From assembly GCA_964187785.1 (NCBI GenBank), contig OZ076420.1, forward strand, positions 2,728,001-2,792,000: 64,000 nucleotides of DNA. Reading direction: 5' to 3'. The notes beneath the pieces were generated by a model. That model was given only the letters and a program-made list of their open reading frames with translations, did not search any database and was not told the origin of the DNA. The translations under genes were made by a program, and so were the position numbers. Below, piece after piece: positions 15,901-60,359 of this stretch; within the stretch, counting starts at the first letter, position 1; the number at the start of each line of letters is the position of its first letter. The DNA comes from Amphiscolops sp. MND2022 (lineage: Eukaryota).

Positions 15901-18900
15901 AGCGCACAGCCTCATAGAAATGTTCGGGTGGCTTTCAAAACATTTTCATAACTTTCACAGTGGCAAAAAAAGTATCAGAAAAAGCGACCTGTTGCCTCAA
16001 AAAACGACTTTGTGTGGATGAAAAAAAACACCCAAATTGATGAAAAAGTCGCAGTGTCGGAAACCCAAAACAAGAATCCCTTGGAAAAAGGGTCGTTTAT
16101 CAGTGAAATTTTAAAAGAAATAAAAGGATTATTTTGGATTGCAGTTGTAAAATCTTGCGTGGAGGTTTGTTATTTTTATCTTAGAGATAGATCTGATAAT
16201 TATTTTTCTTTATGAGGAAGATTTGTTACAGAAACGATTTTATTGTTCTTCTCGAAGTTACAAAGTATAGTAAAAATATCACAAAACTAACTGGTTGATC
16301 CATTTTCCATGACGTCATCAAAGTTGGGATAAGTGGCAGTTGAGGGCGCGTTGATCTCGCGAAACTTGTTTTTCGTCTGCCACAAAAACAGGGTGTCACA
16401 TCTCAAGTCAGAATTGCCCTCCAGCAAGTCGTAAACCGTCGAGGTTATAACTTTGGGGTAGTTACTAGTCCAATCAGGGATGAGAATTTATTGTAAACGT
16501 AATTTTTAGACATTTGTGAGAAATGTGCCGAGATGTCTCGTATTGCTAATAAAAATTCCTATAGAAAAATATGCATTTCTGAGAAACGTTTAAAATATTG
16601 TCAACAATTTTGACGCCTTAAAGACAAAAACTTACGTTTAACTCGCTAAAGATGCATCCTATTATAAATTGGAACACCGATATTTTCGATGAAGATACTG
16701 AATAAATTTTGTTTGAAATACGTTTTTTCGCATTTTTTTCCATTTTTTACGCAATTTTTGAGGTAAATTTATTGCGCAACTTTTCAATATTTTAACGCAA
16801 TAAATTCTCATCCCTGGTCATAATGGAATGTATCTTCTCAAACGGCTTCGATGCTTCTATGCACTTTGGATTGAAGAGTTCCTTCGTTTCCGAATCCACA
16901 AGACCCCAGAAAACCAGAAGTGCCAGGTCACTCAAGTTTCCCGTTTCGTTCACGTTTTGTTCGTTCCACAGTTTTTTGGAGTCTATGAACCGCTGACCCC
17001 AGTTTTTAACATCACCACGGGACGCTAATGACGTCATGAAAATATTCACAACTTGACGCACTTTGAGATCTAGGTTCTGTTCATTGAGGTTCAACACGAA
17101 AACGTCTATCAGCGGAAGTAGCGAAAGGAGACCATCTTCGTGAATAAGTTCATTACCGGACAAGAATTTGCAAAGTTCCAATAAACTGCTGTTTTTTCCT
17201 TCCGCTTCCATAAAAAGTCGACGGTTATGTATGTTTGAAAAACGAAGGTTCTGAAACGTCTCCGAAAACTTGAATTTATCCGTCAAGTAAATACTGTCCA
17301 ACACTTCAAATATCAGTTCTCTGAACTCAGATGTCATTGTTATGTCGAAGACTTGTTGAAAATCCAAATCTGAGCAGCTAATCACTTCTTCAAGCGAAGA
17401 GCTGAGACCAAACTTCAGCGCGAAAACGAAGTCTTGGAAGGAATTGAGGTTGTTTTTGGAGTAACTCAAGGCAGATTTGAAGTCTAGAAACGCTTCAGCG
17501 GACATTCGGGACAAACTGCTGATTGAAAAACTGTACATTCCCAATTGGGGGTCTTGAAACAAGTTGAGATTTCCGTCATCAACTGCATTTTTGACCGCTT
17601 CTATCTTTTCGGAATCGCCGTTGATTTGACCTTGAAGAACAGTTTCAAGAACCGGAACTTTGAAGGATCTTTGCTGCAGGCGTGAAATGATTTCATTTGG
17701 GTTTAGATCAACTTTCCGGAGACAAAACACAATGTCGTCTTGATGGGAGTTTTTGAATAACATCTCAGCTGCCGTTTTACAGGCCGCTTTTTGGGACGAG
17801 AAAGCATCGTAGCTGAAAGCTGCCAGATTACTCATTGATACCCGGCTAGCTCGGTCCCTTTGTCAACAATGTTACACAAGTTTTGAAATGTTGCTCAAAA
17901 ATGGTCAACTTGAGATTCAGTGGATTAACAAACCGCTTTTTCATCAATCAATGTTTGTTTTGACCGAATTCTTGTCGAACGAGACAGGAACGTCTCAAGT
18001 CGACGCTGAACTCAAAGTTCAAAAAGCGCAAAGTTTTCAAAATATGCTAAGGACGTCTGATTTCAGACGAAAAATGAGAATTTTGAAACTGTCTCATAGT
18101 GCCGAAAAACGCAAAAGAGGAGAAGGACCCTTTTTGTCATCGAATCTTGAGAGAAAGGTCACTGTAAGAGTTGAGTATTTTTTGTTTCACAGAAATCGCC
18201 GACTAAAAAACAGCATTTCTAAGGTTCTTTATTGCTTTATTATTCCTAAATTACTAGCCAATGGGCGAAATACGTCCATGTACGCATTTTCATTCGAAGT
18301 ATTTTCATTTTCCTAGAGAAACTCTTACGGATAGTTTAATACATGCTAGTACTTCAGTATTACCTGGAAAGCAACTGAAAAAGTCCAGATAAGCTAAGCA
18401 TTCATTCTCGAAGATTCAGACTTCTAACGGAAGAACTTTTCTACAAATCTTCATTGTTTTTCTCAATATTTGAGAAGTTAAACTTGAACAACTTCTAGAC
18501 GTGTAACAGTGCCTCTTGTCTGAAACATCTTCTTGAATCGACTGGTTGAGAAGCGATTGTTTAGATTGGATTTTTTCCATAAACCCGATTCCGCTTCTCA
18601 GGCGTCTCAGACAATGCCCAACTTCAGCCAGAACATCTTTCCAGTTGAAATTCGCTCTGCTTTTCTCGTTGAGACACTTGAACACCGTTATAAGATGCTT
18701 CAAAAACATACAAAGAAGCGCCTTGGTTTCAGGGTTCGTCCCCACAACATTCGATCGACAAACTTCGTTGCAAATTTGATTTATGGCCGAGAGGTAATTG
18801 TTGGAAATTTCTTCCGAATCCAGATCGAAACTGTTATGGGACCATGCCATCTATTTGCCCCAAACTGCTTGGGGATAAGACACAAGGTACAAATACCATT

Positions 18901-21900
18901 ATGTCGACATCGTTTGCGTTGAAATTTTGGTCCAATAAAATAATGTCGACACAATCCTATCCATTACATTGACTGTCAGTTAAAAGTTGCTCATTAGATT
19001 TTATAGCGGACAAAATTTGCTCTGAAATAGGGGGCCTTTTATACGATTTTAGCTTGTTCCAAACGTGAATTTCTGCTATTTTTGGATAATACAGTAAACC
19101 CTCGATTATTCGCCAACTTTGGTCATCCGCCACAAATCTACCGGGACATTTTGCTATAACACCCGTTTCTAAGTTCCCTTGATTAACCGCCACTCTCACT
19201 TATCCGCCATAATTCTGGCTGGACCGATAGTGGCGGATAATCGAGGGTTTACTGTAATATCAAAAAATGAGGGTAATTTTTTGCCTGAAGTGTCAAAACA
19301 GTTGTAGAGACAATCCTCTAAGTATTTACTTTCATATAATATTCTCTTACTCGTGAAATATATTTATTCAAGAACAAAATGTGCTTTCGTGTTGGGGGGA
19401 TATTCCCAACAAGGTGTACCTAAGGGGGGGGGGTTTGATGATATGGTCCCTGTTGTGCTCTTCGAAGTAAATTAGCCAGCGGTCCAAGAAGTAGCCAATC
19501 AGATCGTTTTGAGTGTCGAGAACGTTTTTGGGTAATTTGTATCCAGGTAACCCGGCTTTGGTTTCACTGTTCAAGTCGGTGAATCTATCCAAGGCGGATA
19601 TTCCAGAAAAGTTGACAATCTTTTCCAGCAAAGTAGCCGAAGCGACGCCTGATATGACTATCTTGATTTTACCCCTTTCCACAATGGCAATACCCTGGAT
19701 CAATAGTGTACATTTTTAAGCAATTCAGGATTGAAACGAAGTTGGAATTTTGAAAAAAAAATAGATCTTTAATTCTGATAACTTTTGTAATTAAAAAGGT
19801 AAAGAGGATTCCAAAAATAAGCAACACTTATAGAAAAAAAACTCTGATGATAGAACTCTCCAATTTTTTTTTCGCTAACTTAATTATATCATTGAGGTTC
19901 AAACACGAATCACCTAGCAATCGCAAAAAGCTGGTAATGGAACAAGCCGGGAACGTTCTGCAAAAGAACACAGGTGCTGAATATGCTCAAAGGCCGTTTC
20001 GAAAAATTCTGAAAACTTTCAAAAAATCTTAAGGTGTCCCGTCAGGCTCGAATAAAACATTTACTTAACTGGAAAGGTCAAGCAAGACAAAAGGACAACC
20101 TTTAGTTGTTTTCTTAATCAAAGTGGAAAACCATTTTCATCACTTCGACCGACTAATTGAAAAAAAATCTACCAAAAGGGACGAAAAGTCATCACTATAA
20201 CAGTATAATTCGAAAAAAACGCAACACAGATAATGATTTCTTTGGCATGTGAATGAATGTAGACAAGAGCGAGGCAGACACCTGGACTGAAGGACAAGGC
20301 ACCGGAATCTGATCAGCCTGCAAGCCAATTTGTCTGACACACGAGAAGTTCTCTCCGTCCAAGATGACCACTTTCTCCCGGTTCCACAGGTACACACAGT
20401 TCTCGAACACCACGCAATTCTGCACATTCTCCAGCGCCACCGAAGTCTCGCTCCATTTCGCTGTGCTGAGGTGGTCTCTGTCTGTTTAAAAATCAGGATG
20501 GGTAATTGTGGTAGACTTGTAATTTATCATTACCCTAATGCCGAATTGCAAAAATTTTTCCGAAAAATCGTACCATGACAAAAAAAACAATGGACCCTTT
20601 CGACTTGAAAATGCCTTTTCTTATTCATAATATTAAAGAAAGGGCGAAATCAATTTTTGAAAAAGCTCACAGTTCCGAAAATAACCTATTAGGTTCCGAA
20701 ACAAAACTTTATTTAATCCGAATGAGTACCGTATTTCTTCGAATACAGGCCGCCGGTTGTAAGTTTTTTCCGTAAAGATTTCGCGGCCTACATCCGAAGA
20801 AATATGGTAAGCTACGACTTTCAAGATGAAATTTACAAGCTTAATGCGGCTTCTAATCGGGGGCGACTTCTATTCTAGAGGTGTACCGGACAGCAAGTCC
20901 GGTCCGGTATTCGGCCGGATTTCAGGAAAATGTCCTGTCCGGTATCCGGCAGCCCTTTTTACAATGTCCGGCCGGATATTATCTTAACATAATAATCTTA
21001 AATAGGAATATCTAACTTAAAAAAAGTGTATGTGCATCAAAATATTGAATTTGTGATTGTGAATCAAAATTCATTAAGTTATGGCGGAGGGAAAATTTTT
21101 CACCGTTCTGTGGTAAAAGCCTGCTTAGTTTTTCGTAATCATCATTGCCCAATTCAGAAAACAGCCCTCCATCGCTTACAATTGAGGACAATGTCCGGTC
21201 CGGCCGGTATCCAGCTTCAATCAGTCCTGTCCGGTTGTCCGGCCGGACGGAAACTTTCCTGTCCGGTGCACCTCTATTCTATTCGAAGAAGTACCGTGAT
21301 GTAACATGAGAAACATGATTAGATTATGTAATTTACACATGTACCTGCTAACGCAGAAGCGTGAGAAAACGCCATATTGAAAAGATACGAGTCAGAATAC
21401 AGTTACGCCAATTCACTTGCTTTTGCCAATTCTATTTCTTTTGCCACCTCGTAGTAAGCTATACCAATAACTCACTGTTGTTTCAAAGATTTAGAAGCTG
21501 AACCCTCCTACAGTTTACTTGAACCAAGAGTTTCACAAACGCTTTTTTCAGAGCGCTCAAGCGGCTCAACTTTGAGCTGCACAAAAAGTGTAGGGTTATG
21601 CGTCGTAATGTTAGACATGGCTATTTTTTTCGCTAATCGCTAAAGTGGTAAATTCAAAATCGCTAATTCGCTGAAAACTTTTCATCGAATTATTAATTGT
21701 TTGAAATCAAGAATGTTTTCGATATAAACGATAACTTACTTAATTCAAATTTTGCAAGAAAAGCGAATTTTTACAGGGTTTTACAGATGAAGAGTGGGCA
21801 TTTTTCAAATTCATTTTGAACCTCCCGAGTATTTTCGAGGGAATTTTGAATTAGGACAATCTATTAATTGCCGCTAATTTGAATCACTAATAGAATTGCT

Positions 21901-27923: not shown

Positions 27924-30900
27924 CTGCACAACACCACAGCCACAGGGTTGTTCACAATTAGACAGTGTAACCAGAAAAGATAATAGAATACCTTTTCAAA
28001 CACTTTTTCAAACATCAACTATTACGCGGTCGCTCACCCTGGGAGCAGGAAAACCTTCTAAGGAATATCGTCTAAAACCAAGTCATGTTCATTTCCCATT
28101 GCATTTGTAGACACAGCAAAACTCGGATAAAAGAAAAACAGAGGGCGGTAAGGATAGAGTTTCTCTTATCCATAGTTTCTTTCATCAGTTGAACTATTAA
28201 CATAGAAAATTTGTCTTGTATAAAAGCGGCGGAGGAGTGAAAACATTTCTTATATCCAAATGTTTCTCTTATCCAAGTTCGACTGTACATTGAATTTTAG
28301 ATGTTATGCTTTTAGACGTTATTCCCGAAAAACTTTTAGACGTTATTCCTAAGACTTTATTCGCGCCCCTAGAAATTCTCCCTCCGAATTTTCCACATTT
28401 CTACATGACCTAGGAAAGTACAAGAGAGCAAAGGGCACCACTTTTGTTTTTTCAGCACTAACTTTTTTGGAAGAGAAATAGTTTCACTTGAAGTTTCCTC
28501 CTTTTGAATTTGCATTTTCAGTTAGAAAGAGGCCCTCACTTTTAGGATGATAATCAGCTCTAAGATTTTTTTAGAATTTACATGAAAACATCCTTTTAAT
28601 CCTATTTGAAAAAGTTTGGGCTTCATGAGCCTTGAGATGTTTTCTTCTCTTATCTGTCTTCAAATACACAGAAAAAAGGTTGAAAGTAGTGTCAGTAACG
28701 GTGCAGTAAAAATAAACGGTAGAAATTTCAGCGACAGGTGGGTTAATGTATGAAAAAACTGAGATACGGATCAAGAAATTCACAAAAAATTATTGCCAAG
28801 TAAATCACGGCAGCTTACCTTCGTTTTTGGGCGTTCTGTTTTTTTGGTTCACTTACTAGGTGAACCAAAAAAAAACGGAACGTACAAAAAGTTTTTGAGC
28901 TCTCAAAGTTCCAAATATTTGTCAACAAACGTTTCGAAGCTCCTGTCAATCATTCAAATTTGTTACATCTCTCAGAAGCGAAAATGCTTTCACACATTGA
29001 AAGTGAGAACGAAATTACTGGTAGACACGTCCTAGACTATTTTTGATGGCACAAACCATGTTTGGTTGGAGATGTGATTACGTAATATGAGCTTCAATCA
29101 AAATAATTGATAGATAAAATTGAGAGATTATCAGTGACTTGTTTACAAACAATACGATTTTGAAGACGCAAAAATTTGCACGTTCCGTTTTTTTTGGTTC
29201 ACCAAGTAGATATCTTTACCAGTGAATTTGTTCTTATGTTGCGTGAAGTTCATTCGCAGTCGAATGTGTAAATGAAACGCTGTCAAATTGAATGATTGAC
29301 AGGCTGAATTTCACCGTTCCAAGTTGTTTTGAAACATTTTGTTGACAAATATTTGACATTTTGAGAGCGTGAAAAGTTTGTGCGTTCCGTTTTTTTCTGG
29401 TTCACCCAGTACTAGGTGAATCGAAAAATCGGAACGCATAAAGTTTTATGCTCTGAAAATGTCAAATATTTGTCAACAAACGTTTGAAAGTAACTTAGAA
29501 CGCTGCCGTCAATCACTGGAATTGCCATGTTTTCTTAGAAGCGAAAGAACTTTCACACACTTTTCACTTTTTCTGAAGGTTCTTACCGTCCTTAACTGAT
29601 ATATTTGATTACGTAACGAGAGCTTCATTCCAAGTAATTGAAAAAAAGTCCAGTGTCCTGTTTACAAATAATAGGATTTGGAAGACCAAACTTTTGTGCG
29701 TATGTTTTTGGTTCACCTGGTAGTTCGAACGATTCTTAGTTGAAGATGTGATTACGTAAGAACACCATCATTCTAAATGATTGACAGAAAAATTGCAAGA
29801 AATTCAATGCATTGTTTACAAATAAATTGCCCAGGAATGATTTTCTAATCACGGTACCGCACTGTAAAGTTTTATGTGTTCCGTTTTTAGGTTCGCCTAG
29901 TATGATGCACAGTATGATATTGATACTGTCATTTAGTCATTTTTAGTCGGCGCTTTTCCATTAAGGGAAAAATGCCCGACTATAGCAGTGACTGTTTTTT
30001 TTCTTCAGACTACAATCCTCACACTGATCGGCCCACTTTTTTGAAACAATCCTGAAACCACCTAAGGCGCCCAGTCCGGCAAAGGGGCCAAGGCAAACTT
30101 AGTTCAAAGGGTCCCCCTTTCATTTTTACTTTTTCAAGGTAACCTACAAAACCGGACGGGACTAAAGAGTCCCCGCTTTCGAATTTTTTTCGGCACTGTG
30201 CTTTTTTTCGAAATTTTTTTGTCTCCAAGGGGTCCCCCTTTCATTTTTTACTTTAACGTAACCTACAAAACCGGCCGAGGCTAAAAGGTTCCCCCTTTTG
30301 ATTTTTTTCGGCACTGTGCGACTTTTTTTCGAAAATTTTTTAATGTCCCCAAAGGGTCCCCCTTTGAGTTTTTTGTTATTTTGCAACAGAATGCATGTTT
30401 GGAAATCAAAAAGGGTCCCCTCTTTTACATTTTTCGGCACTGTGCGAAGGAAAAAATTTTCAAAAATTTCAAGTTTTTTCCAAAAAAATGTTTTGCGCTT
30501 TTTGAGCCTTAGATATAGCGCCGACTTTAGACGTTCCCGTCTTGTTGGAATAATTTTGGCTGTTTCTCAGATCGCAGCCATACGATTCTGATACCAATGA
30601 GCACGCGTAGAATGACTGTGATGAATCTTATAAAAATCGCATGGACAGTTTTAGAGACATCTGAAACTTTCATTGAAAGGTCGGGAGAAAAAAGTACGAG
30701 TGCACAAGTAGTGGAAAACTTATCCACTCCTAAAAATTTACACGAAATTAAAGATACACAATCCGAGAAAAGAGGAAAAATTGGAAAATGGCGAAAGGTG
30801 TGGCAAGGTCAAAGAGGATCCAAAATGACACAGGCAGTGTCAATGTCGGATCCTTCAGGGAAAAAAGTAAACATGGAAAACCATAAATTTGAAAAATTGA

Positions 30901-33900
30901 ATATTCGGTGTATGGTATATGAAATGGGTGTTTTGCAAAAGCTGAACTTTTCCAAAATTCCGTTTTTGGCCAAATCGATTTTTCTCGAATTTCCTCGCCT
31001 CGACCCATAAAGAAAAGTAGCAACCCCATACTCTTCCACAAGACCTTGTGCAACAATACCAAATACGCTGTTGCTAATATTTCAAGTTCCTAAAATAGGT
31101 TTTTATTTTCCGCCCACACAAGTTTATTTGTGAATGGGGGACGAAAATCATAATCCGTGTTGCGTATTTTTAGTCGGCGCGTTTTCCTTTAAGGAAAAAA
31201 GTCCGACTATTACAGAGGCTAGTTTTTTTTTCGTCAGACCACAGAGCTCATCGCGTATGTACCACTTTTTACAGAAACTGATAAGACTACTCAGGCCAAG
31301 TCAGGCCAATGGAAACTTAGTGCAAAGGGTCCCCCCTTTCATTTTTTACCTTTTTTACGTAACCTACAAAACCGGAAGAGACCAAAGGTTTCAATTTTTT
31401 CTCGGCACTGTGCGAAATTTTTTTTCGAAATTTTTTTAAGGTCTCAAAAGAGTCCCCCTTCGAGCTTTTTGATATTTTGCAACAGAATGTATGTTAATGA
31501 ATCCCAAAGGGTCCCCCCTTTTCATTTTTCGGCACTATGCGACATTTTCGAAGTTTTTTTTCAAAAAAAAATTTTTCAAAAAAAATTTCAAATTTTGTTC
31601 CCAGTCGGGAAACAGTGATTTTCCAGTCATATCGAGCATGAAAGGCACACTTTGGGTGTCTCGAAAGTGTTTTCAAAGCTTTTCATGAATACGTCCTGAG
31701 CATATTTAGAAAACTTTGCGCTTCTTGAGCCTTAGATATAGCGCCGACTTTAGACGTTCCCGTCTTGTTTCTACCAGTTCTGCCAAATCTCCACGATCTC
31801 CATCCACTTCAGTTAGTACCTAATTTAGTTACTTTGGCGCAGTTGGTAGTGCGTTTGTCTGACCGACACGAGGTTGTCGGTTCGAACCCGTGTTAATGCG
31901 TTTCATTTTGGACGGAAACATTTGTGAACAAGCCTGTATGGTGTCGAGGGCGGACAGAGTGGCATTTTCGGCGGCGAGGAGGATGATGGCTGCACAGTCG
32001 CGTCCACTGAAGGTACCCTCGTCAGCCGCCCGGGCCAGGTTGTAGAGGTAGCTGCGACAGGAGCCCAGTCGCGTGTACATGTCAGCCATCTTGCCTGATC
32101 TCACCCAAACACAAACACGTCAACATGGTCAGTATGAATAATAATAATAAATTTATTTATTCTGATTTCAATAGAAAAAATATTCAATTTATATACATGA
32201 AAAGAACAATTTAATTACGAAATCAGGAAGAGACACCCAAAGGGCTTGCGCCCGCTCATTAGCAAGCCTCGTGACATCAAAAATATTAAATTGAATAAAC
32301 TTAACTTGAGTTGGTGGAAAGTCACGAGTAGTAAATGAATCAAGCTTCCGCTCAAAGGATACCTTCATGTGCTAAATTTCGAACGTGACACTTAGTTTTA
32401 TATTTTGGTCCAAACTTCAAAAAAGAAACTTTTTAGAGATGGAGACTGAAGTTAAGTTAAGGATGTCGTTAAGATGGAGTTCTGAGGTTAGAAGTTTTAC
32501 AGAATGCCCCCACAGGAGACATTCTTGAATCTAGTGTGAACATTTCTGTACAGCCTTCAGATTACACGTTTAGGATGTAAACAATGTATTCAAGTATCTG
32601 ACAATAAATAAATATTTATTTTTTGTTCCAATGTATTTGTGTTTTGGGCCAATATATTTTGATTATCAATTTATTGTTGGAAAGTCATAACACAATGTAT
32701 TATTATGATAGTACACGCGATTTCTAGACCAATTGTTATAACGTATTCGGATTTAGTTACTAGTCGTGTGGAAAAAATGATTCAGAAAGTTTGGTAAACA
32801 TAGTGATGGTTATAAATATAGTCCAAGAAGTGTTCAAACGAAATCTTTGTTCGAACAATATATTTTTTCCATACAATATTGAACAATATATTTATTATAT
32901 TTGATAGCCAGCAACTATTAAATATGAATATATTTTTTAAAAATTATATTTGAATAAAATGTTCTACATTCTTGAACACAACAAGCCCAAGGGGTTGACT
33001 CTGAAACCACATCATCATTTCATGCTTTTACTGTCTTCACACTTCATTCCCGTAATACTTTGACGTATTTGAGTCGATTTTAGACGTACGTTTTAGGTTT
33101 GGCGTTCTTCTCGCAACTAAACCAAGATTCATTAATTACAATGTCAACAAAACCGAGCTGAAGAGAATTCATGTTGAAAGTGAAAGTACAAGCCGATAAA
33201 GAGAACGGTCAAAATGAACGTGTTAAAGTAGACTTCAACAAAGATTGACAGCCACGAAAAAGGATCAGAAACAAAAGGCGGGAAGGCCCATTTTCATACC
33301 TATAAACAAAGCGGTGAATATGAAAGCCAAAAACTCTAGAGAAAAACGTCTGGTATACACAGAAAAAGTGTAGAGGAAACTTCAGAAAAACCAAAATCAT
33401 TATTGGACTGAAAATCAACAAAATCAACATCTGAAAAATTTCCAGTAAATCTCCAAAATGTCGAATTCCTTCTACGAAGAAAGCAAAAACTCGTGTTCTG
33501 TCTACGAAGTCTATGGGTGGTGGGAGCCTCAGACAGTGGAATACGAGTCGAGTGAGCCAGCGCCAAGGGATATATCTAACGAGAATGCTAAATTCAGAAA
33601 TTTAGGCAGCTTTGGATTTAATTTTGCAATGGACTGAAGCCTCCCACTGATGACTCCTTCATCTGGACGATTCGAAGCTGAGATTTTTGATGATACTGTT
33701 TATAGATGATACTGAAAATATGATACTGTTTTGGAAATCATGAACCAAATCAAATATCCGAGCAGCACCCATGCTCCGCTCTCTAAGAAAATAAAACTGC
33801 AAAAGGTTGTACAAATGAACGCTTAGACCCGGAAAAAAACAAACCTCGGTTAATTTGTGTCAGGAAATTACGGCTCTCCATTCAATTCGAATGCATATGA

Positions 33901-51900: not shown

Positions 51901-54900
51901 ATTCGTATTTCCAGCGGTGCATTCGTCTCGCAAAACATAACGTGCTTCTTGAAGTTTTGTTTGACAATGGGTTGAAAGCAGTTCCGGCAAAATCGGGATT
52001 TGGGACCCTTCCCTTGCTCAAGTTTCGATCGAGTCAGGAAGTGAATCAAACTGGAAAAGTGTTTGATCAAACAGTAGTGATTGTTTTTGATGTCGACCAA
52101 CCGCAAAAGATCAGTTTTATTCCTCGCCTTCCGATTTTTTGTGTGATATACAGACACTAGCTTACTCTCCTCCAATTGGTAAACATTGATGGAACAGTCA
52201 TTTTTTCTTTCGAAGCAAGGGATTGACGTTAGAGGCATTGGCATAAGTTTCGAATTGAAATGTAGTCCCTGGATGTTTTTCCTGTGTGACTTGGGACTTG
52301 TGGCTCTTCCAACAAACGAAAACAATGCTGCCGCTATACGGTACAAAAAGCAGAAATTGTCCCGTTTGTTAACGATATTTAAAATGGTTCGGGTCAATGG
52401 CTTTAGGAGCGCAGAGGTGTTTCAATGTATGAAGCACCAGTTGCGTTACTGCACGACACTGTTTTGATTTCCAATCGCTTCAAGGACTGTACCACCCAAC
52501 CGGAGCCTCCAGTAGCAAAGACATTCAACTGACTCATCAATGCATCAACATGTTCATGGTATTCATCATCCGTGAAGGCACATGCGATTCTGGACATTGG
52601 TGAATTGAAAAAGCCTCAGTAACTTCGCTCTTAAAAGGTTTCTTCAATTTGACACTGATCGTTATCCCCAGCTTAACATTTGGTGTTTCTTTCAAAAGAT
52701 TGTTCACGAATCCAATAACTCGATCTTTGTGAGGAACCAAATAGTTGAATGGCTCCAATGCTCTATCACTCTCCAACTTGACGCGATGAATAAGGAATTT
52801 CGAACTTATTGCTTTAGTCGTGAATTCAAGCAAGCTAGAGACATCAATCGTATTCGAGTGAGGGGTTTTTGTTTCACCATGGAAAACTTCGTTGTGATCT
52901 ACGAGTGCAGCTTCGTTCCCAAAATATGTGAGACAGGAGAAGCAACGTACACTGTTATTTGAATTGTGTTGTTTCCTGATGTGTCTCAATAAGTTGGAGC
53001 TAATTGTAAAGCTCGCATCACATTCACCACATCGGAATATCTTCGCATTGGAATTGCTTTGACTATCGTGTTTTTTTTTTCGCATGTGATCTTTCAAAGC
53101 CCGTTCCGAGCCAAAAAGTTTAGCACATTGGGTGCAAGAAAAGATGGTGAAATTCGTTCTTTTAGTTCATAAACAGGTAAAAAGTCGTGGTCCGTTTATT
53201 TCACTACAAAAAAAATCAGCACGGAAAAAACAGCACTTTGTATTTTGGGACCACAGCTTTTTACGGTGCTGGGTCACGTTTTCCGATATTATAGAATTCA
53301 AATTAAAATATAACAGAGCGTCGCAATAGTACTATGGAAAGTGAATTTGAATTGAGGCTCAGTTCATTAGGTGAGAAAGTCGAATTATCGGATTGAAAAT
53401 TATCGGATTGACCAAGTCAGAATTTGATAGCCTACTTTCACTCTGTTAGTTTTGTTCACTTTCCGATTTCGGTACCGAAACTACCGTTAAAAGTTTGCAC
53501 AACAAAGTAATTGTGACTACGGATGACAGTTGGTTTGCATAGGATTTGATAATCTATATTTGGTTCAAATTGTACTTCGAACTCTCTGACTAAGATGAAT
53601 TTCGGTTTGGGATCGAAAAATTACACTTAGTGGTTTGGGATCAAAAAATTGCAGATGGTGGTTTGGGATCGAAAAATTGCAGTAAACCCCCCTTCTCTTA
53701 CTACTAGCGTGCGTTCAGAATCTTGATTCCAAAAATTAGACAATCAAAAGTGACAAAATAGAAAAATAGAATTCAAGATTATATAGATAATATTAAATGA
53801 TGAGATAATATTACGACAATATAATGCTAAAGGAGAGGGGAAAAGGTTGGAAATGCTGCTTCCCGTAGCGCCGCAAACTTTCAATCCTATTTACCACCGG
53901 TATACGAGCAGTTGTCTGCTGAGGCATCACTAAAATTGAATGTAGATTCGGGAAATTTAGAAAATTTAATCTTATTGGTTCGAGAATTTGATTGAATGTC
54001 GTTTTGCAAATTTTCAGCGTCCTACACGGCAAAGCAAGGGTTTATCTACACGAACCGAGTTTATCCAGCTTGGGAGACGTGGAGAATCCCTTCATGCCCT
54101 TCTCGACGAGAAAGGCGGAGATGCTGTGCTGGGGCTTGGAGTCCTGGTGGGCAGCAGTCTTGGCGTAGACGACGAGGACATCTGCGTCGGATCCATTGGT
54201 GATCCAGAACTTGGTGCCGTTCAGCAGGTAGCTCCTCCCGTCCGGCTGCAACTGGGCAGTCAACTTCATGCTGACCACGTCAGAGCCCGCGTTCGCTTCA
54301 CTCATCGCCAGTGCACCCACGTGTTCGCCTACAAGGGGAAGGGAGGGGGTTGTAGCAATAGATTATTTTTAGTCGGCGCTTTTCTTTAGAAAAGAGTCGA
54401 CTATAGTCATGGCTTTTCGTCAGTGTTTTTTTTAAGACCTGCTGAACTGACCAAAATAGTTCTACCAAAAGTTCTACAAAATTTTCAGAAGAAGCCAAAA
54501 TGTACCTGTTGGCCCAAGGAACTGAACCAGAAAGGTTTCGCGCGTAACATACAATACCGGACGAGACCAAAGGGTCCATTTTTTCGGCACTGTGCGACTT
54601 GTTTCAAAAAACTTTTTTCCCCACGAAAGGCCCCCCTTCAATTTTTTTGGAGTTTTGCAACAAAATGGATGTTGAAAAATCCCAAAGGGTCCTCCCTTTC
54701 AGTTTTTTTTCGGCATTGTGAGACTTTTTTCAATTTTTTTCATAAAAGTAGTCCCAATTCAGCAATGATTGGAAATTTTGAAGTCCTTTTGCTATTTTTG
54801 AGCCTTGGATTTGGCGCCGACTTAGACCGTTCCCGGCTTGTTTATTCAACAAAAAACAATTATATGAAATCAGTATTTACAATCATCGTGTACAGACAAA

Positions 54901-57824
54901 AGCGCCCATTTTACACAGTCATATGCGCCCCAATGCAAAACGTCTTACTAATTTTTGAGTTGATTTCACCGCCTCTAATTAAGCGTAATTGAAGGTGTTC
55001 AAAGACAAGATTGACTCACTGGTATTGCCAGATTTCACATTCTCACACCTAACATATCTCAATTGAAAACGACTTAAACTGCTAATTGGTGGTGGAAACG
55101 AGTCAGCAAATCCTCTGTAGTTTTTGATTGGGGCGCTTTTGTCTGGTAACCAGAATGATACATCGTCGGAAATATAAATGTTGGAATTGAACTAAAATAG
55201 TAGTAGACATAATCATAGTAATCCATCTACTCATAGTATGTCTATCATGGTATGTATAGTATGTCTACTATAAATTATTAATTGATAACCACTAGAATAA
55301 ATTGAATATTGTTAGGAGCATTAGGTAAATTTTCATTTGACTTTCATTTACTCTGACCGGAAGCATAGTTTAATCATTCAAAGCTCCCTGTCGAACGGAG
55401 CGGCCAATCACAATTAGGAATTCTATTCGGTTCTGGTAAAAAAAATAATCTGAATTATAACCGTTCAGCTATACAACCTACCACGAATGGAGAACGATGG
55501 TGTTCGCCTAGAAGCGAGGAGTTTTGTGGCAAAAAGTCGGAATTATTTCAAATCAGGGTCCTGCCGAAGGCTCCAAAAGTGCGAATTTCTGAAGAAACTT
55601 TGCCAGAAATGGAGACCAAAAAGAAGACCCTTTGGTCTATGTAGCTTTGTATTTCGAGTAACAAGCCGGGAACGGCACTCTCATAGGAATCTTCCGCGGA
55701 ATTTTGTTCATCATGAAAGACTGGCTACAGCAGCGTTCTAAAATATCGCAACTCCATTACTCAAAATGACAAAACTCAAAACCAAATTTGTGAGTTTTCA
55801 AGACATTCGGATTAGAAATTTCCAATTTTCAGCAATGGAGTTGCTATATTCTAGAACGCTGTAACTTCCTATACTAAAGCAATAGTAGTTGAATTATGAC
55901 AATCCCAAGTGGGTGCATATCAATTTTTATGACCATTTTTATTTCAATAAAAGTCGGTGTTTTCATCACAGTTTTGACATCGCTCAATTCCCGCTATATC
56001 CTTTTCGCTAAACCGCTAACTTCAAAATCGCTATTTTTCAAATAATTAAATGTTTGAATTCAAGTATGCTTCAAAATGATAACTTAACTCAAAGAAAAAT
56101 TTCTCAGATTGTGTGAGTTTTACGAGTGTAGGAATTGGAATTTTTCGAAATTCATTTTGAAACTCAGTGTATTTTCGAAGTTGCCGCTAATTTGAATCGC
56201 TAATAAAATCGCTGGAAAATTCCGCGCAGCCGCAAAATGGCTGACTAGCGGTGTGAAAACTCTGGTTTTGATCTATAACAAGCCGGGAACGCCCAAGTCG
56301 GCGCCATATCTAAGGCTCAAAAAGACTCGAAAACGAAAACCACTGTTTCTACAACTGGAGACAACAAAAGCTCTCAAAAAACTAAAAATTGAAAAAAAAA
56401 TTCCGATTTTTTTCGAAATTTTTTTGAACTTTCCGGTAAGTCGCATAGTGCCGAAAAATGTAAAAGGGGGACGCTTTGAGATTTTTTGAACATCCATTCT
56501 GTTGCAAAATATCAAAAATTGATGGGAGGAACAATAAAAAAATTCGGAAAAAAAATCAGTCTCGCAGTGCCGAAAAAGGGGGAAAGTCTCATAGTGTCGA
56601 AAAAAATGGACCCTTCTGCTTTGGAATGGCTTTTTATCTCATGTTAGAGGCTCTGGATGCGTTGAAAATGAAGTACTAAGTACATATGGTAAAAGTTGGT
56701 AAATGTGCATTAATGCACAAAAAGTGGACGTTTCGCGTTGAACTGACCAAAAAAAACTAGCCACTGTAAGAGTCGGGATTTTCTTCGAGAACGCCGACTA
56801 AAAACTATTCAAACCTGAAATAAGTTTGGGCAAGTATTTCTGTTTCTGTTGCTCGTTGCCGTGTCTCACGATCTGGTTGACACACAGGTTGGAATGGGCC
56901 CCGTAGCTGAGAGCAATGCCGGCACTGGCTCTCGAGAGTTCTTCCATGGCAATGCAATGTTCCAAGTAGCCCAGTTGTGACCCTCCATATTGCTCCGGAG
57001 CAGTGATGCCCAGAAGTCCGAGACTGCCCAGTTTCTGCCAGAAGTCTCGCAGCTCCGGGAAATTGTTTTCCTGTACAGATTTGACATGGCTAGTGAAGAA
57101 ACATTCATTTGCGCTAAAATTGTTGCTTATAATCGAAGTACACCAGGGTAGCAAAAGCTTAAAACAGCCGATTTGGCTAACTAAAATTTTCAAAGCGCCA
57201 AATCTTTTATTATATTAATTTTACAAAAATATATCGGGAGCAAAAGTCACCAACACTTTTGATCAGCTATTCAAAGGTATTTCGTGTTTTGAAATCGCAT
57301 CAAAATTAGAAAAATTATATCACATTGTACAGTACTGTAGGCTTTTTTAGGCTCCATTTTCTCGAAATTTCAAAAACTCTCATTTCAAAAACACGAGGCT
57401 CAAAAAGTCGTCATTGAAAAAGGAAGAATTACTGTCTCAAGAATCTCAACAATGCCTAACAGCAGACAAAGCTGGTTCTGGTCCTACGTAAAAGATAGAA
57501 GACATCTCCGCAAATTTCAACCATGTATCCACTTTCAACCGCTGATGACTAAAATATATTCACACGATGTCAAATCTTGGTTTCCTTGTCGATCCTATCT
57601 GCAATTGGCGCCAATTCTTCCTGGGCGAACTTGGACACAGAGCGTCTGAGTTGGATTTGGTCAGAATTCAGGCCATAGAGCCGATCATCAATTTCTGTGG
57701 CTGTGTGGTAGTTAAGTCTCTGCGCCGCGGGTAAAGCCGAAAAGACGACGTTCTTTCGGATAGCGCTGCAGGTATACTTCAATGTCCAAGCCAAAGACGA
57801 AGACATTGCATGTCTGAAATGCAT
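27783..57824 (-). CDS. IVD: Isovaleryl-CoA dehydrogenase, mitochondrial; 6 exons (57824-57585, 57070-56815, 54328-54056, 35252-35013, 32094-31934, 27923-27783), about 436 aa
   Basis: Joined translation matches the acyl-CoA dehydrogenase IVD throughout: [113 protein letters not shown]. All phases are consistent (1311 nt). Confidence 0.95.
29941..30546 (-). mobile_element. Family M copy
   Basis: Both ends present. Confidence 0.75.
31167..31769 (-). mobile_element. Family M copy nested in a T-run of another repeat
   Basis: The flanks rejoin into the repeat seen uninterrupted at about 14990-15075. Confidence 0.8.
31835..31895 (+). repeat. tRNA-derived SINE head
   Basis: TGGCGCAGTTGG...GGTTCGAACCC; similar B-box remnants at about 7550 and 58725 (minus strand). 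Confidence 0.55.
31934..32094 (-). CDS. IVD: IVD exon 5
   Basis: [10 protein letters not shown]...ALDTIQ; donor CAG|GCTTGT (GC). Confidence 0.95.
34529..34900 (+). pseudogene. BEL/Pao LTR-retrotransposon pol fragment
   Basis: [37 protein letters not shown], the Pao RT-RNaseH connection motif. Confidence 0.8.
35013..35252 (-). CDS. IVD: IVD exon 4
   Basis: [15 protein letters not shown]...GHFQFMQG. Confidence 0.95.
36046..38907 (-). CDS. LINE ORF2: AP endonuclease plus reverse transcriptase
   Basis: QYNARS, ICETW, GGVLIA, GDFN, SNHEP (APE); [23 protein letters not shown] (RT). The frame is open from directly after the ORF1 stop. Confidence 0.97.
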   Translation of the reverse strand, partial: LGLSDQLFSVLQYNARSIINKEKRISLSNYACMKDPDIIMICETWLTKFFNDEELYLPQYDLFRSERLPNKDGNSLHGGVLIALKKRYTGRKITLPTKYLGACTACTFTFDSSTILLINCYFPPSESEYILSPSVITELFNIFATTKHDALIMTGDFNYSDIDWRDLSYQNESQKLLLNFAEKMNLDQKVTFNTTVSGIYDLFFISRKIEVQDIRIAEEIVGVKSNHEPLWSVFTVRGHGNKFKPENSSEFLSYCKADYLRMEELIIQNPFETFCWSNIDHLVEMWYKWIRGIIRETTPLRTKHRSNLPPWVTSSTSHLIKKLNTAKKQNSKSKIEKLDKVVSLALVNDQKSYEEHLSDGRNTNRLFKFYRQLNRSSLPSSMFLANETHTTNLGKASLFAKFFSSVYFESTKFNPDQEIPECQFPIITKLEVNLEEICQICDSLNISKSKGPDLLPPIVFAKCSNSLSKSVYQLISKSLQLAKFPTSWKISVVSPIHKKGNKCDVTNYRPVSLLCIISKIMEIFLFMKLYEHYQDQLHNSQFGFRKGRSSSLNLLVYLDEIYRALTEKQQISVVYTDFEKAFDRVDHGLLLQKLFRTGIRGKLLSLLDSYLQNRFQIVKVDDATSQPFPATSGVAQGGILSSLFFNIFINDLPHICRFTWAILYADDAKFICLNLTLLEKQEELNNIFIWSVDNFINFNLDKCGQLCFKNENHDQLTFGGAPLQSKDQETDLGVIITKSLSWVPHFKSRAEKAYRVFYMIKRNSPSLSSQHKLNLYKSMILPILTHSSIILPLNVECMRILERVQKKVCNWIIPDSSYKDCLIKLNILPVPFYFQLLDLLYLSKILTQNINYDFSDKFNYYNEYTYHTRLEPYRFLQESRPKPATAEQNFWFRAKRLAMQLPSPIDIREYDTLKPKLLYWMWREFLETFDELNTCTWRMKCDCVAKNCRLLNN
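38908..39750 (-). CDS. LINE ORF1 (coiled coil plus RRM/CTD-like RNA chaperone), 280 aa
   Basis: Duplicated heptad [14 protein letters not shown]; RLGK...RPRTLLVKF...VFISKSLS pattern typical of LINE ORF1. Confidence 0.85.
   Translation of the reverse strand: MGERGRLASADSSYYPTLDEVLSSTDDDLNKYLNKTVKGNVVSLFKELINRYRDNGTIKTEIGEMKQSLAKVVEEVQQLKEQPPPSKATYSEITQSLAKVVEEVQQLKQPVPTKVTNNEVTHNEVNINERSIELRVSGIPEFKSSHSKPNRSEQIDYEEKSIASIVKYLECEDDCIKSFHRLGKYQPNTTRPRTLLVKFKTELVVNKILARANKLRFYEGDGIQDKYKVFISKSLSKTEQELENKLLKKRRELINEGNQPSTLRIRSFELFLNDRRVDLN
41800..41908 (+). repeat. Polinton left TIR
   Basis: Inverted match to 53597-53705 (about 8 mismatches by eye); three internal copies of ttt(c)gatcccaaacc. Confidence 0.95.
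43373..43933 (+). pseudogene. Polinton accessory ORF: N-terminal PLA2-like motif and C-terminal hydrophobic helices (possibly two fused small genes)
   Basis: GGDIGPA...[12 protein letters not shown] resembles the viral PLA2 G-P-x loop plus HDxxY; the stop overlaps the ATPase ATG (ATGA). Confidence 0.4.
43930..44643 (+). pseudogene. A32/FtsK-like DNA packaging ATPase with two in-frame stops (44161, 44452)
   Basis: Walker A GPAGCGKT, Walker [26 protein letters not shown]. Confidence 0.92.
44640..45410 (+). pseudogene. Polinton small basic/core-like ORF remnants
   Basis: Basic then amphipathic tail [27 protein letters not shown], followed by an interrupted ORF (to about 45410); position after the ATPase is typical of Polintons. 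Confidence 0.4.
45411..46154 (+). pseudogene. Minor capsid protein (penton, single jelly-roll), N-terminally truncated and frameshifted
   Basis: [24 protein letters not shown]...[25 protein letters not shown], typical Polinton mCP motifs. Confidence 0.85.
46260..46556 (+). pseudogene. Small Gly-rich virion/core protein precursor
   Basis: [17 protein letters not shown]...AIPVIKKY...GKNLL, like the conserved small ORF between penton and MCP; a candidate adenain substrate. Confidence 0.55.
46847..48115 (+). pseudogene. Major capsid protein (double jelly-roll), with stops and frameshifts
   Basis: [54 protein letters not shown]; stop near 46955 and frameshifts near 47690 and 48010. Confidence 0.9.
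48144..48622 (+). pseudogene. Adenain-like (Ulp1 family) cysteine protease, frameshifted
   Basis: Catalytic pattern GRHW...WDCLG...Q..SNLCGLYC. Confidence 0.88.
49218..53140 (-). pseudogene. Protein-primed family B DNA polymerase with N-terminal C2H2 fingers and an EndoVII-like Zn motif; fragmented
   Basis: YDAHHII, FLDSYQF, YLKTDV (exo); [31 protein letters not shown]...FGH (pol); CFICG..H*HLTG..CNL. Confidence 0.95.
53597..53705 (-). repeat. Polinton right TIR
   Basis: Reverse complement of the left TIR. Confidence 0.95.
54056..54328 (-). CDS. IVD: IVD exon 3
   Basis: [21 protein letters not shown]...KLDKLG. Confidence 0.95.
54366..54842 (-). mobile_element. Family M copy at the 3' end of IVD intron 2
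   Basis: Both ends present. Confidence 0.75.
56277..56804 (+). mobile_element. Family M copy at the 5' end of IVD intron 2
   Basis: Both ends present; inverted relative to 54366-54842. Confidence 0.75.
56815..57070 (-). CDS. IVD: IVD exon 2
   Basis: [15 protein letters not shown]...KYLPKLISG; acceptor gtacag|, donor G|GTTTGA. Confidence 0.95.
57585..57824 (-). CDS. IVD: IVD exon 1 (transit peptide to RIDK)
   Basis: [35 protein letters not shown]; donor AAG|GAAACC is non-canonical. Confidence 0.9.
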
Positions 57825-60359
57825 CTGGAATTAAGACGACGTTTCAGTTCAATAATGTTGCAATTAAGATTAGATGGGCAATAGGGAGCTGACATGACGA
57901 ACTGAACTAAAAGCACGAAGATTTGCTTGGCCACATTGGTCCTTGAAAAATTGCGATAAATTGATGACATTGACAACTTCCGAAGCAGACCTTATTGGGC
58001 CCAACAAATTAAAATAGGACACAAGCAATCGAAAGCTAGAAAGTGTTAACATTTCTTTGGGTCCTAAGCTACCCTAGGTTGAAAAAAAAATAAAAATCTT
58101 GAAAAAATCTCGCAAGATGTCTTGCAAGATCTGGCAAGTCAATGCATTATTCTTGCAAACTGTCTTGCAAGATTCTTGCACGCAATGGATTGCACTTGCA
58201 AGATTCTTACAAGACTGGCATCATCTTGCAAGAAACTTGCAAGAATAACATTTTTTGTAAGAAACATGCAAGATTTCAATTTTTCTCAGACTAGGGTAAA
58301 CATGCTTCAAGCTATATGGCTGCGCATCCTCGACAGTTTCATACAAGACTATTAAGATATCAAACAAATCGGGAACGGCCCAAGTCGGCGCCCCGCTTAA
58401 AGCTCAAACAGAGTAAAGTGTTACAACTATGCCAAAGGACATTATTGTGAAAATTTTTATAGTGCCAAAAATACCCGAATGGGTACCCACAAAACTCGAA
58501 AACCGCTTTCCTTACTTCGAAACATCCCACTTTCATTTCCTAAAATTTCTTTCTGCAAAAGTCTTATAGTGCCAAAAAACCTTAAGGGGCCCTCTATGCT
58601 CGCAAAACGCTTTGTCTGCTAAAATTCGAAGGGGGCTTCGGTAAACAAATCAGAAAAGGTTCGGAAAGTGCCGGAAAAAAGTCTTTCTTTTACCTTTGCC
58701 AGCATAAAAACTTGGATTTAGTGCGGGACTCGAACCCACGCACTCCTGCTTCTTAAGCCTCGTCACCAGACCTGAAAATAAGCGTCAACTGTTAGGTCGA
58801 AAGGCAGAGCCTCTTCCATATAAAATTTATGAACGTTTTGAAAGTGGGAGCTTCAGGAGACGCTTGCCACTGTGAGTCAGTAGTATTCGAAATCCCGTTC
58901 CTGATAAAAAAAAACCATTGAAAAAACCATTGAAAAGTTCACAAAAACCATTGAAATTAAGCACTTTTCCCAAAACAAATCATTAAAATTACTTGAGTCT
59001 TGCACTTTTTACTTCTCAATTTCAAAATTTTGTATTTTTTGTTGCAGAACTTTCAAACAAACATCTCTGTAAACTAGATAAAATTCTCAGATTAATAACT
59101 TCAGTACTTTGAAGTTTTGTAGTTGTGACAGTTTACGAGATATTTGGTTTTGAATTTGCCATTTTGGGCAACCGAAATGCGATAATTTAGAACGCTACTC
59201 ATATCGTAATTCAGTGCATTCTAAAAAATTGCAACCGGAGGTTTTTTGAGGAAAATGTCCGCCTCGTTAACAGAAACGATCATTAGGCAAACTTTCATTT
59301 TATATGCCATCTAAACATGTTATGTGGTCAGCAATTATACAAGGTCTAGCCAAATAGGCATTAGCTCGGGCCGCCAGTATGTGGAAAAGGTCCAAAACAA
59401 ATGGCTGAATGCAACTCGTCAAATAATAACAGATTACCGACCGGGGCTACCTAGTGCTAATTATGGATGAATTTTACTTCATTGATGCGTGAAATTTTCA
59501 GTTTCACGCATAACACAGAGGCGAAGCCGTGCTTCGCAAACACTTGCGAACTTTTGAAGAAAACCAAATAAGCAATATCATACGGAAAACCAAGGGTAAA
59601 AGGAGATTAAAATTTCATCAATTTTACAGCGCCAAAAAATACCCGAAGGGATACGCGTAAGCCTCGAAAACCATTCTTCCCCAACTGAAAACAGCAAAAA
59701 ACCCATTCTTTCTCAACGGAAAACCTTAAACAGAAAATAGAAGAAAAAAAATTTCAAAATTTTTCGAAAACATTTTTGATGAACTCCGGTAAGTCGCAAA
59801 GCCTTGAGGAGTCCTCTCGCAAAACTCTCTTGAAAAATTGAGTAGGGGCTTCGGTGAAAACAAATTTTAAAAAAGTGGCATAGAAAAAAGATCGGTCTTT
59901 AAAAAAACGGTCTTTTAAAACTAAAAATTGAGAAAAAATTTTCCGAATTTTTTTGAAGTTTCCGCTAAGTCGCATACGGCCGAAAAATGTGAAAAAGGGA
60001 TCCTTTAGGATTTTATAACATTCGTTCTGTTGCAAGATATCAAAAAATTGAAAGGAGGACGCTTTGGGGACATTAAAAAATTTTTGAAAAAAAATAAGGG
60101 AGTCTAAAAATTTTTGAAAAAAAATTAGAATTTTGAAGTCTCATAGTGCCGAAAATTCTGAAAAAAGGGACCCTTTGGGATTTTTCAACATTCGTTCTCT
60201 TGCAAAATATCAAAAAATTGAAAGGGGGACTCTTTGGGGACATTTAAAAAATTTCGAAAAAAAGTCTCACAAAGCCGATAAAAAGTCTAACAAAGCCGAA
60301 AAGTCTCATAGTGCCGAAAAAAGTCAGAACCTTCAGCTTCGGAATACTTGTAAAAAAAA

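Follow-up and report, generated by a model that had tools for sequence, protein, structure and literature searches.

A putative GA-AG intron with self-complementary ends, probably born by insertion, in the isovaleryl-CoA dehydrogenase gene of an acoel

We analysed a 64-kb window of the acoel Amphiscolops sp. MND2022 (positions 2,728,001 to 2,792,000 of contig OZ076420.1; all coordinates below are those of the window), whose minus strand encodes isovaleryl-CoA dehydrogenase (IVD). The first intron of this gene has no GT at its 5' end, is absent from the orthologous site of related animals and carries near its two ends a perfect inverted repeat. Our preferred reading, to which we assign a probability of about 0.7, is that intron 1 is a real lineage-specific intron that was born by insertion, that it is spliced as GA-AG and that its stem helps to define the intron. 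The first two exons and the intron between them comprise the following features.

57585..57824, minus strand: IVD exon 1, with its start at ATG 57824 or at the in-frame ATG 57806, ending in ...APIADRIDK (placed by translation and homology)
57579..57587, minus strand: 5' splice site of intron 1, AAG/GAAACC, with AG at the exon end, G at +1, A at +2 and A at +3
57071..57584, minus strand: IVD intron 1, 514 nt, GA...AG, phase 0, absent in all relatives examined
57570..57572, minus strand: in-frame TGA, 13-15 nt into intron 1
56815..57070, minus strand: IVD exon 2, ending in ...KYLPKLIS and followed by a canonical GT donor at 56814

The borders of the intron were set by homology. When searched with phmmer against solved structures, exon 1 aligned to residues 32-73 of human IVD, with its final K at residue 73, and the N that is the second residue of exon 2 fell on residue 75. 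As aligned, exons 1 and 2 are colinear with the human protein, with zero residues lost and no space for a micro-exon. An earlier note on this DNA had placed the join at RIDK/ENNF, with the donor AAG/GAAACC and the acceptor GTACAG, and had named an unseen micro-exon as a way in which this could fail; the gapless alignment confirmed the former and leaves no room for the latter. Since homology places the join at IDK/ENNF, the non-canonical ends of the intron, which begins with GAAACC and ends with GTACAG, are forced. The presence of AGGAAA at both junctions results in seven equivalent cut registers (AG-AC, GG-CA, GA-AG, AA-GG, AA-GA, AC-AA and CC-AA). None of the seven has GT-AG, GC-AG or AT-AC ends, and GA-AG (57584..57071) is the sole register with G first and AG last. 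An unspliced IVD message would meet the TGA four codons past exon 1 and end in IDKETKI. With intron 1 removed, the gene model has six exons and an intact 1311-nt frame of 436 aa. IVD is single copy in the 1.07-Gb assembly, where the sole other matches are paralogues at 30-35% identity.

The comparison with relatives outlined the origin of the intron. The closest relative (P0001; L017 and L026) is 88% identical to exon 2, and on a 69.9-kb genomic contig it carries an uninterrupted open frame of 202 aa, which opens with the start codon, contains ADRIDKENNFSELREF and reaches the exon-2 end, where the next intron follows. Three further relatives (P0152, P0153 and P0154; L022-L025) read through the intron-1 site, in two cases on contigs of 31 to 402 kb, and in a coral (L027) it falls within an exon of 31 codons that has other introns on both sides. 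IDKENNF is retained in the full-length transcripts of another two relatives, and (R/L/K)IDKENNF is kept across the join in five acoel relatives and the coral. The site being uninterrupted in the relatives and in the coral, intron 1 is therefore a lineage-specific insertion. These results back the intron-creating insertion that the earlier note had proposed; the check it suggested, for an intron at this position in orthologues, found none in the relatives examined or in the coral.

DNA reads bear on the reading frame. The read evidence consisted of contigs from four short-read DNA runs, placed on the window at a threshold of 95%; a search for runs that contain the locus gave these four and no RNA run. 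Seven of the eight variants that they show in exons 1 and 2 are at third codon positions (56957, 56984, 56990, 57020, 57026, 57618 and 57624), including all five of the exon-2 variants; the eighth, at 57692, exchanges Ile and Val, and the closest relative carries Val. The coding frame thus appears to be under selection on either side of intron 1, and the 514 nt would therefore have to be removed precisely. Removal at the DNA level was considered and rejected, as the whole-animal DNA reads contain the insertion on unbranched contigs.

Next, we studied the ends of the intron, where the following elements are found.

57567..57577, minus strand: 5' stem arm AGATTTGACAT, intron +8..+18
57077..57087, minus strand: 3' stem arm ATGTCAAATCT, intron -17..-7, filling the stretch from the likely branch region to the AG
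57581..57586, minus strand: 5' copy of the direct repeat AGGAAA, with 9/10 matches if extended to 57577
57067..57072, minus strand: 3' copy of the direct repeat AGGAAA, which supplies the acceptor AG and the first exon-2 codons

The two arms (57577-57567 and 57087-57077) are perfectly complementary over 11 bp. The stem was searched for in the first 60 and the last 100 nt of the intron; as a control, 2000 pairs of equally sized windows were drawn at random from introns, and 0.6% of them reached 11 bp. Further inward, as far as about +34, the duplex goes on with bulges, and its predicted free energy (dG) of -21.4 kcal/mol is reached by 2.4% of non-cognate intron-end pairs. When the whole intron was folded, the 11-bp stem was the closing helix in both the minimum free energy (MFE) and the centroid predictions. 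The reverse-complementary ends described in the earlier note are thus exact and are also kept in the predicted fold. Its second claim about the ends, that AGGAAA is directly repeated across both junctions like a target-site duplication (TSD), held as to the repeat, which is exact; the TSD reading is only suggestive, since splice preference and the Glu-Asn codons also favour AGG and GAA. The uninterrupted site of the closest relative has a single gacaaa^gaaaac.

From these elements we propose how the intron could have arisen. About 508 bp of foreign DNA would have entered a continuous IVD coding exon at ...AAG^GAAAAC..., duplicating the target bases AGGAAA. The upstream copy would have become the exon end and the donor (AAG/GA), and the downstream copy the acceptor AG together with the beginning of exon 2. 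Because the duplicated target would supply both splice sites, cutting at G...AG would restore the original frame exactly, and the donor would be GA because the duplicated target reads AGGA, not AGGT. The major spliceosome may accept such AG/GN donors, needing little beyond AG/G. The near-terminal inverted repeat, probably a relic of the terminal repeats of the element, would pair in the pre-mRNA and bring the weak donor beside the branch and acceptor region, compensating for its weakness and helping to define the intron. In this arrangement the donor is 7 nt from the helix, and between the opposite arm and the acceptor AG there are 6 nt.

We then examined which splicing machinery could act on this donor. 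Canonical U1 can pair with it only at -2, -1, +1, +3 and +4. The genome has at least 21 U1 small nuclear RNA (snRNA) genes above the Rfam threshold (loci L028-L047 among them), many of them clustered on one contig (C12). Of the 20 best, most keep the canonical 5' end, and the variants of this end include ATACTAACCTG (3 copies), ATATTTAAACCTG (2), ATTCTTACCTG (1) and ATACTTACTTG (1). Among the 20 best U1 genes no variant reads GA and the base facing +2 is unchanged; a dedicated GA-reading U1 is therefore unsupported. U12-type introns, removed by the minor spliceosome, have the donor consensus /RTATCCTT and a TCCTTAAC-like branch site. We rejected this type for intron 1, whose donor reads GAAACCAAG and whose last 40 nt contain no such branch motif. 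As for trans-splicing sequences, the genome contains at least 100 exact copies of the 32-nt spliced leader that was published for Symsagittifera roscoffensis (PMC9911081) and, with up to three mismatches, 2378 matches to it versus zero for the control.

To place intron 1 among its neighbours, we compared it with the other introns of IVD and with those of SPG11, the gene downstream of IVD. The IVD-SPG11 synteny is kept in relatives (L022 and L023 in P0152, L026 in P0001). The introns discussed individually are listed here.

27924-31933, minus strand: IVD intron 5, GC-AG, 4 kb, in which +3..+12 and -34..-25 form a perfect stem of 10 bp
54329-56814, minus strand: IVD intron 2, a shared GT-AG intron with a 13-bp perfect stem (+11..+23 with -50..-38)
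18831-19449, minus strand: SPG11 intron, GG-AG, base for base a copy of a miniature inverted-repeat transposable element (MITE) of ~450 bp, enlarged by an inner segment of ~160 nt
16465-16813, minus strand: SPG11 apparent intron, GG-AG, 349 nt, with a 16-bp perfect stem; borders from a distant relative only
13025-14819, minus strand: SPG11 apparent intron, GC-AG, with an 8-bp flanking direct repeat GATACAGG and no terminal stem

The five IVD introns are, in order, GA-AG, GT-AG, GT-AG, GT-AG and GC-AG. The closest relative shares introns 2-4, which have GT, and is without introns 1 and 5, which have GA and GC; its exons 5 and 6 are one open frame. Over its SPG11 frame lie six introns of our animal, with the donors GT, GT, GT, GT, GG and GC, each with an uninterrupted orthologous site in the relative. 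Four more SPG11 introns (G-J), placed less certainly against a distant relative, have the donors GG, GT, GC and GT. Overall, 6 of the 15 homology-defined introns of the window are without GT (GA, GC, GG, GC, GG and GC), a count that comes from a small sample in which four SPG11 borders, and with them two of the six non-GT calls, rest on the distant relative. All six keep G...AG. With significant end pairing defined as that reached by at most 2.5% of non-cognate end pairs, it was found in five of the six non-GT introns and in two of the nine GT introns. The stem of the apparent intron 16465-16813 begins directly at +1, and its partner is -29..-14.

The SPG11 intron 18831-19449 offers a recognisable element. 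Its MITE gave ~4,600 candidate genome matches at first look, and those that were scored show 82-90% identity; long terminal repeats (GGACCATGTCATC...) and target duplications of 8 bp characterise the family. The intron is flanked by its own 8-bp duplication (CACAACAG/CATAACAG), and the site is uninterrupted in the sister species. An exact MITE copy standing as an SPG11 intron means that in this genome inserted elements occupy exons of intact genes as G(N)-AG introns.

Two side observations belong here. One relative encodes SPG11 in one open frame of 2085 codons, and in the closest relative the gene is uninterrupted over at least 868 codons, while it has at least ten introns in our animal; related acoels differ greatly in intron number. 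In IVD intron 2, a block TAAAA(A)TAATC.ATTG beside the 3' arm is conserved with the closest relative despite saturated synonymous sites, and in the relative's intron 2 (L017) the arm at that place differs in sequence and has a 7-8-bp partner near the donor. The difference between the arms may be a compensating change or chance.

The source of the inserted DNA was searched for in the whole assembly. Searches with the whole intron, its 5' part, its 3' part and its terminal 25-mers gave no sister copies of the ends; two 25-mer matches with three mismatches (L012 and L013) share nothing past ~25-35 nt. The ends being unique, there is no introner family, and the family for which the earlier note suggested a search thus came out negative, both ends of intron 1 being single copy in the genome. 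The inner part of the intron contains a repeat.

57139..57329, minus strand: dispersed repeat of ~190 bp, intron nt ~256-446

This repeat, which we read as nested within intron 1, has at least 40 copies elsewhere in the genome at 75-84% identity. A tandem duplication of an exon was rejected as the source, the similarity between the intron and its flanking exons being no longer than a 12-mer, and among known RNAs the intron gave only a sub-threshold match resembling a small nucleolar RNA (snoRNA; E 0.14). What may suggest a transposon origin, by analogy only, is the inverted repeat just inside the ends, the direct repeat at the junctions and the nature of the neighbouring introns.

Several observations weigh against our reading. 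The removal of intron 1 as a GA-AG intron is something that we infer from genomic sequence, and protein searches returned the transcripts of relatives, not a transcript-derived IVD of this animal. The closest relative and our animal share 86% amino-acid and 74% nucleotide identity in IVD and their synonymous sites are saturated, so the gain cannot be dated as 'recent'; a search for closer relatives in JGI metagenomes gave a best match of 76% identity and mostly bacterial sequences. Searched against the 1.07 Gb, the opening 255 nt of the intron, its closing 70 nt and the 25-mers at its ends gave no true match but themselves. The stem stops short of the intron ends, with 3-4 unpaired bases between it and the direct repeat on each side. 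As AGG is expected at any AG/G splice site and GAA fits donor preference, only ~3-6 bases of the repeat are independent evidence of a TSD. The longest perfect stem among the five IVD introns is that of the GT intron 2, and one GG-AG intron of SPG11 has a longer one. The link between stems and non-GT ends comes from 15 introns, with a one-sided Fisher value of 0.035 and rank tests at p 0.08-0.09. Finally, a divergent second haplotype, at ~40% of read depth, is not represented over intron 1 among the contigs.

In a rival explanation GA-AG splicing is real but the stem is inert, a decaying terminal inverted repeat, and the spliceosome takes AG/GN unaided. In its favour, four GT introns out of nine (SPG11 A-D) have neither a counterpart on the sister contig nor a stem, and the GC-AG intron 14819-13025 of SPG11 is also stemless. 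In the MITE-born intron the pairing is simply that of the terminal repeats of the element, and the total fold energy of intron 1 is ordinary (z -0.2). On the other hand, significant end pairing is unevenly distributed between non-GT and GT introns. The 11 bp are still perfect, though the inserted ends have no recognisable genomic relative left, and the shared intron 2 keeps its 3' arm at the same place with another sequence in the relative, which hints at maintenance. We regard the inert stem as unlikely, while giving it real weight.

The gap in the contigs raises a different question, whether the 514 bp could be an unspliced insertion that inactivates the assembled allele while the other haplotype is functional. 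The read contigs contain two deeply divergent haplotypes over 56927-57900, with five third-position differences within 70 nt of exon 2. In each of the four runs, the contig that covers intron 1 and exon 1 reaches only ~40-65% of the depth beside it and matches one arm of the exon-2 bubble. The second haplotype has no contig over the intron, and an unspliced message would stop as described above. Yet neither junction shows a branch in the contigs, and among the joints listed, which are a minority of all joints, none is intron-free. The missing contig is expected in any case: the second haplotype differs at 5 of 70 exon-2 bases, its non-coding sequence would thus fall below the 95% threshold, and an intron in it would be absent from the contigs placed. 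Moreover, many homozygotes would be expected if about half of the alleles of this single-copy metabolic gene were null, the intact frame is kept in at least two haplotypes that bear the intron and differ at 57692, and similar non-GT introns interrupt the nearby SPG11. An inactivated allele is accordingly improbable.

We give slightly less credit to the use of other donors with the same acceptor, which would leave the protein 6 to 18 residues shorter. To find them, every in-frame, stop-free pair of donor and acceptor was listed. The GT at 57638 is the only GT that pairs in frame with this acceptor and costs 18 conserved residues, in agreement with the claim of the earlier note that the sole in-phase GT would delete conserved residues; the GTs deeper in the intron all lie past the stop. 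The GC donors 57611 and 57602 cost 9 and 6 residues, respectively. All three candidates are in frame and free of stops, but conservation of the residues they would skip extends to human, to coral and to every acoel relative, and the GA-AG join is gapless against human. The GC candidates lack the exon AG and a donor-like context, and the exon-1 variants 57618 and 57624, in the part that would be skipped, are at third codon positions. Lastly, an artefact of assembly or sequencing, with a true GT donor or a chimeric insertion, has nothing in its favour beyond the oddity of GA and can be set aside, as the contigs of the four DNA runs span 57032-57900 and reproduce each base, with zero differences in the intron or at either junction; the GA is therefore not the assembly error that the earlier note had allowed for.

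A wider picture, which we offer tentatively and hold to be somewhat doubtful, is that this acoel turns exonic insertions of DNA transposons directly into introns, its major spliceosome accepting AG/GN when inverted repeats zip the ends together. Gain would be ongoing from living MITEs, and IVD intron 1 would be an older product whose stem was kept by selection after its source decayed. If so, any insertion with an AG-containing target duplication would be spliced out at once, and intron gain could be traced to living MITE families in a bilaterian. How introns are born in animals and how donors without GT are tolerated is an open question with few workable cases (Fritillaria, Oikopleura and one copepod), and in our search of the literature no paper turned up that describes acoel introns as non-canonical or as derived from transposons. 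The locus provides a before-and-after pair, an essential single-copy gene with the intron and relatives with the empty site, and an intron recognisable as a MITE copy adjoins it in SPG11. RNA-seq of Symsagittifera roscoffensis is public (PMC9911081), which makes the splicing, the donor rule and the role of the stem quickly testable genome-wide. Gene-model tools restricted to GT-AG would break at such sites.

Stems within introns are known from other systems. In yeast they shorten the distance from donor to branch and help canonical GT introns. In the nonconventional introns of euglenids, +4..+6 pairs with -8..-6, there is no G...AG rule and the introns leave as circles (PMC11282704). As in both, a segment just after the donor of intron 1 pairs near the branch and acceptor, which would unite the reactive sites. 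Unlike in euglenids, the positions of the stems vary among the introns of the window and all non-GT introns keep G...AG. We accordingly rejected a euglenid-type intron, the stem of intron 1 lying at +8..+18/-17..-7 and G...AG being kept in 6/6 non-GT introns.

Introners, as described in Micromonas, Aureococcus and dinoflagellates, are defined by their many near-identical copies (reviewed in PMC11282704). Intron 1 resembles them in its apparent gain by a short DNA insertion, with one splice site that would be co-opted from the target duplication, and differs in its single-copy ends; the SPG11 intron 18831-19449 fits the definition far better. Another parallel is the larvacean Fritillaria borealis, which has MITE-born non-canonical introns, mostly uses AG-AC and AG-AT ends and has a share of non-canonical introns of up to 95% (PMC11282704; bioRxiv 10.1101/2025.08.15.670264). 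There, the positions of GT-AG introns are conserved, and those of non-canonical introns are specific to the species (Henriet et al. 2019, summarised in PMC11282704). The same division between GT-AG introns at conserved positions and species-specific non-canonical introns is seen in the window, together with terminal inverted repeats and, at least for the MITE copy in SPG11, target duplications at the junctions, and in both cases the insertion would leave together with one copy of the duplication. In contrast to Fritillaria, the ends here are G(N)-AG, GT is still predominant and intron 1 is without detectable sister copies. One register of intron 1 is AG-AC, as in Fritillaria; the other non-GT introns of the window do not have that option.

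The donor itself is matched in a copepod and in Oikopleura dioica. In Eurytemora affinis, GA and GG donors have an obligate AG at the exon end and A at +3 (PMC5714493); its GA/GG-AG introns were described as recently acquired, and a variant U1 was proposed (Robertson 2017, PMC5714493). GA/GG-AG introns are likewise known from Oikopleura dioica (Robertson 2017, PMC5714493; Frey and Pucker 2020, PMC7072748), and GA donors in an AG/GAA context are supported by RNA-seq in both genera (PMC5714493, PMC7072748). Our case differs in its host, an acoel, and in the end pairing and putative target duplications, neither of which is reported in the available text of those papers; unlike in the variant-U1 proposal for the copepod, the 20 best U1 copies are unchanged at the position facing +2. 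In concordance with both systems, intron 1 has G at +1, AG at its 3' end, AG at the exon end and A at +3 (AAG/GAA), +2 being free to be any base, and G(N)-AG introns are not isolated here but frequent, at 6/15 in the window.

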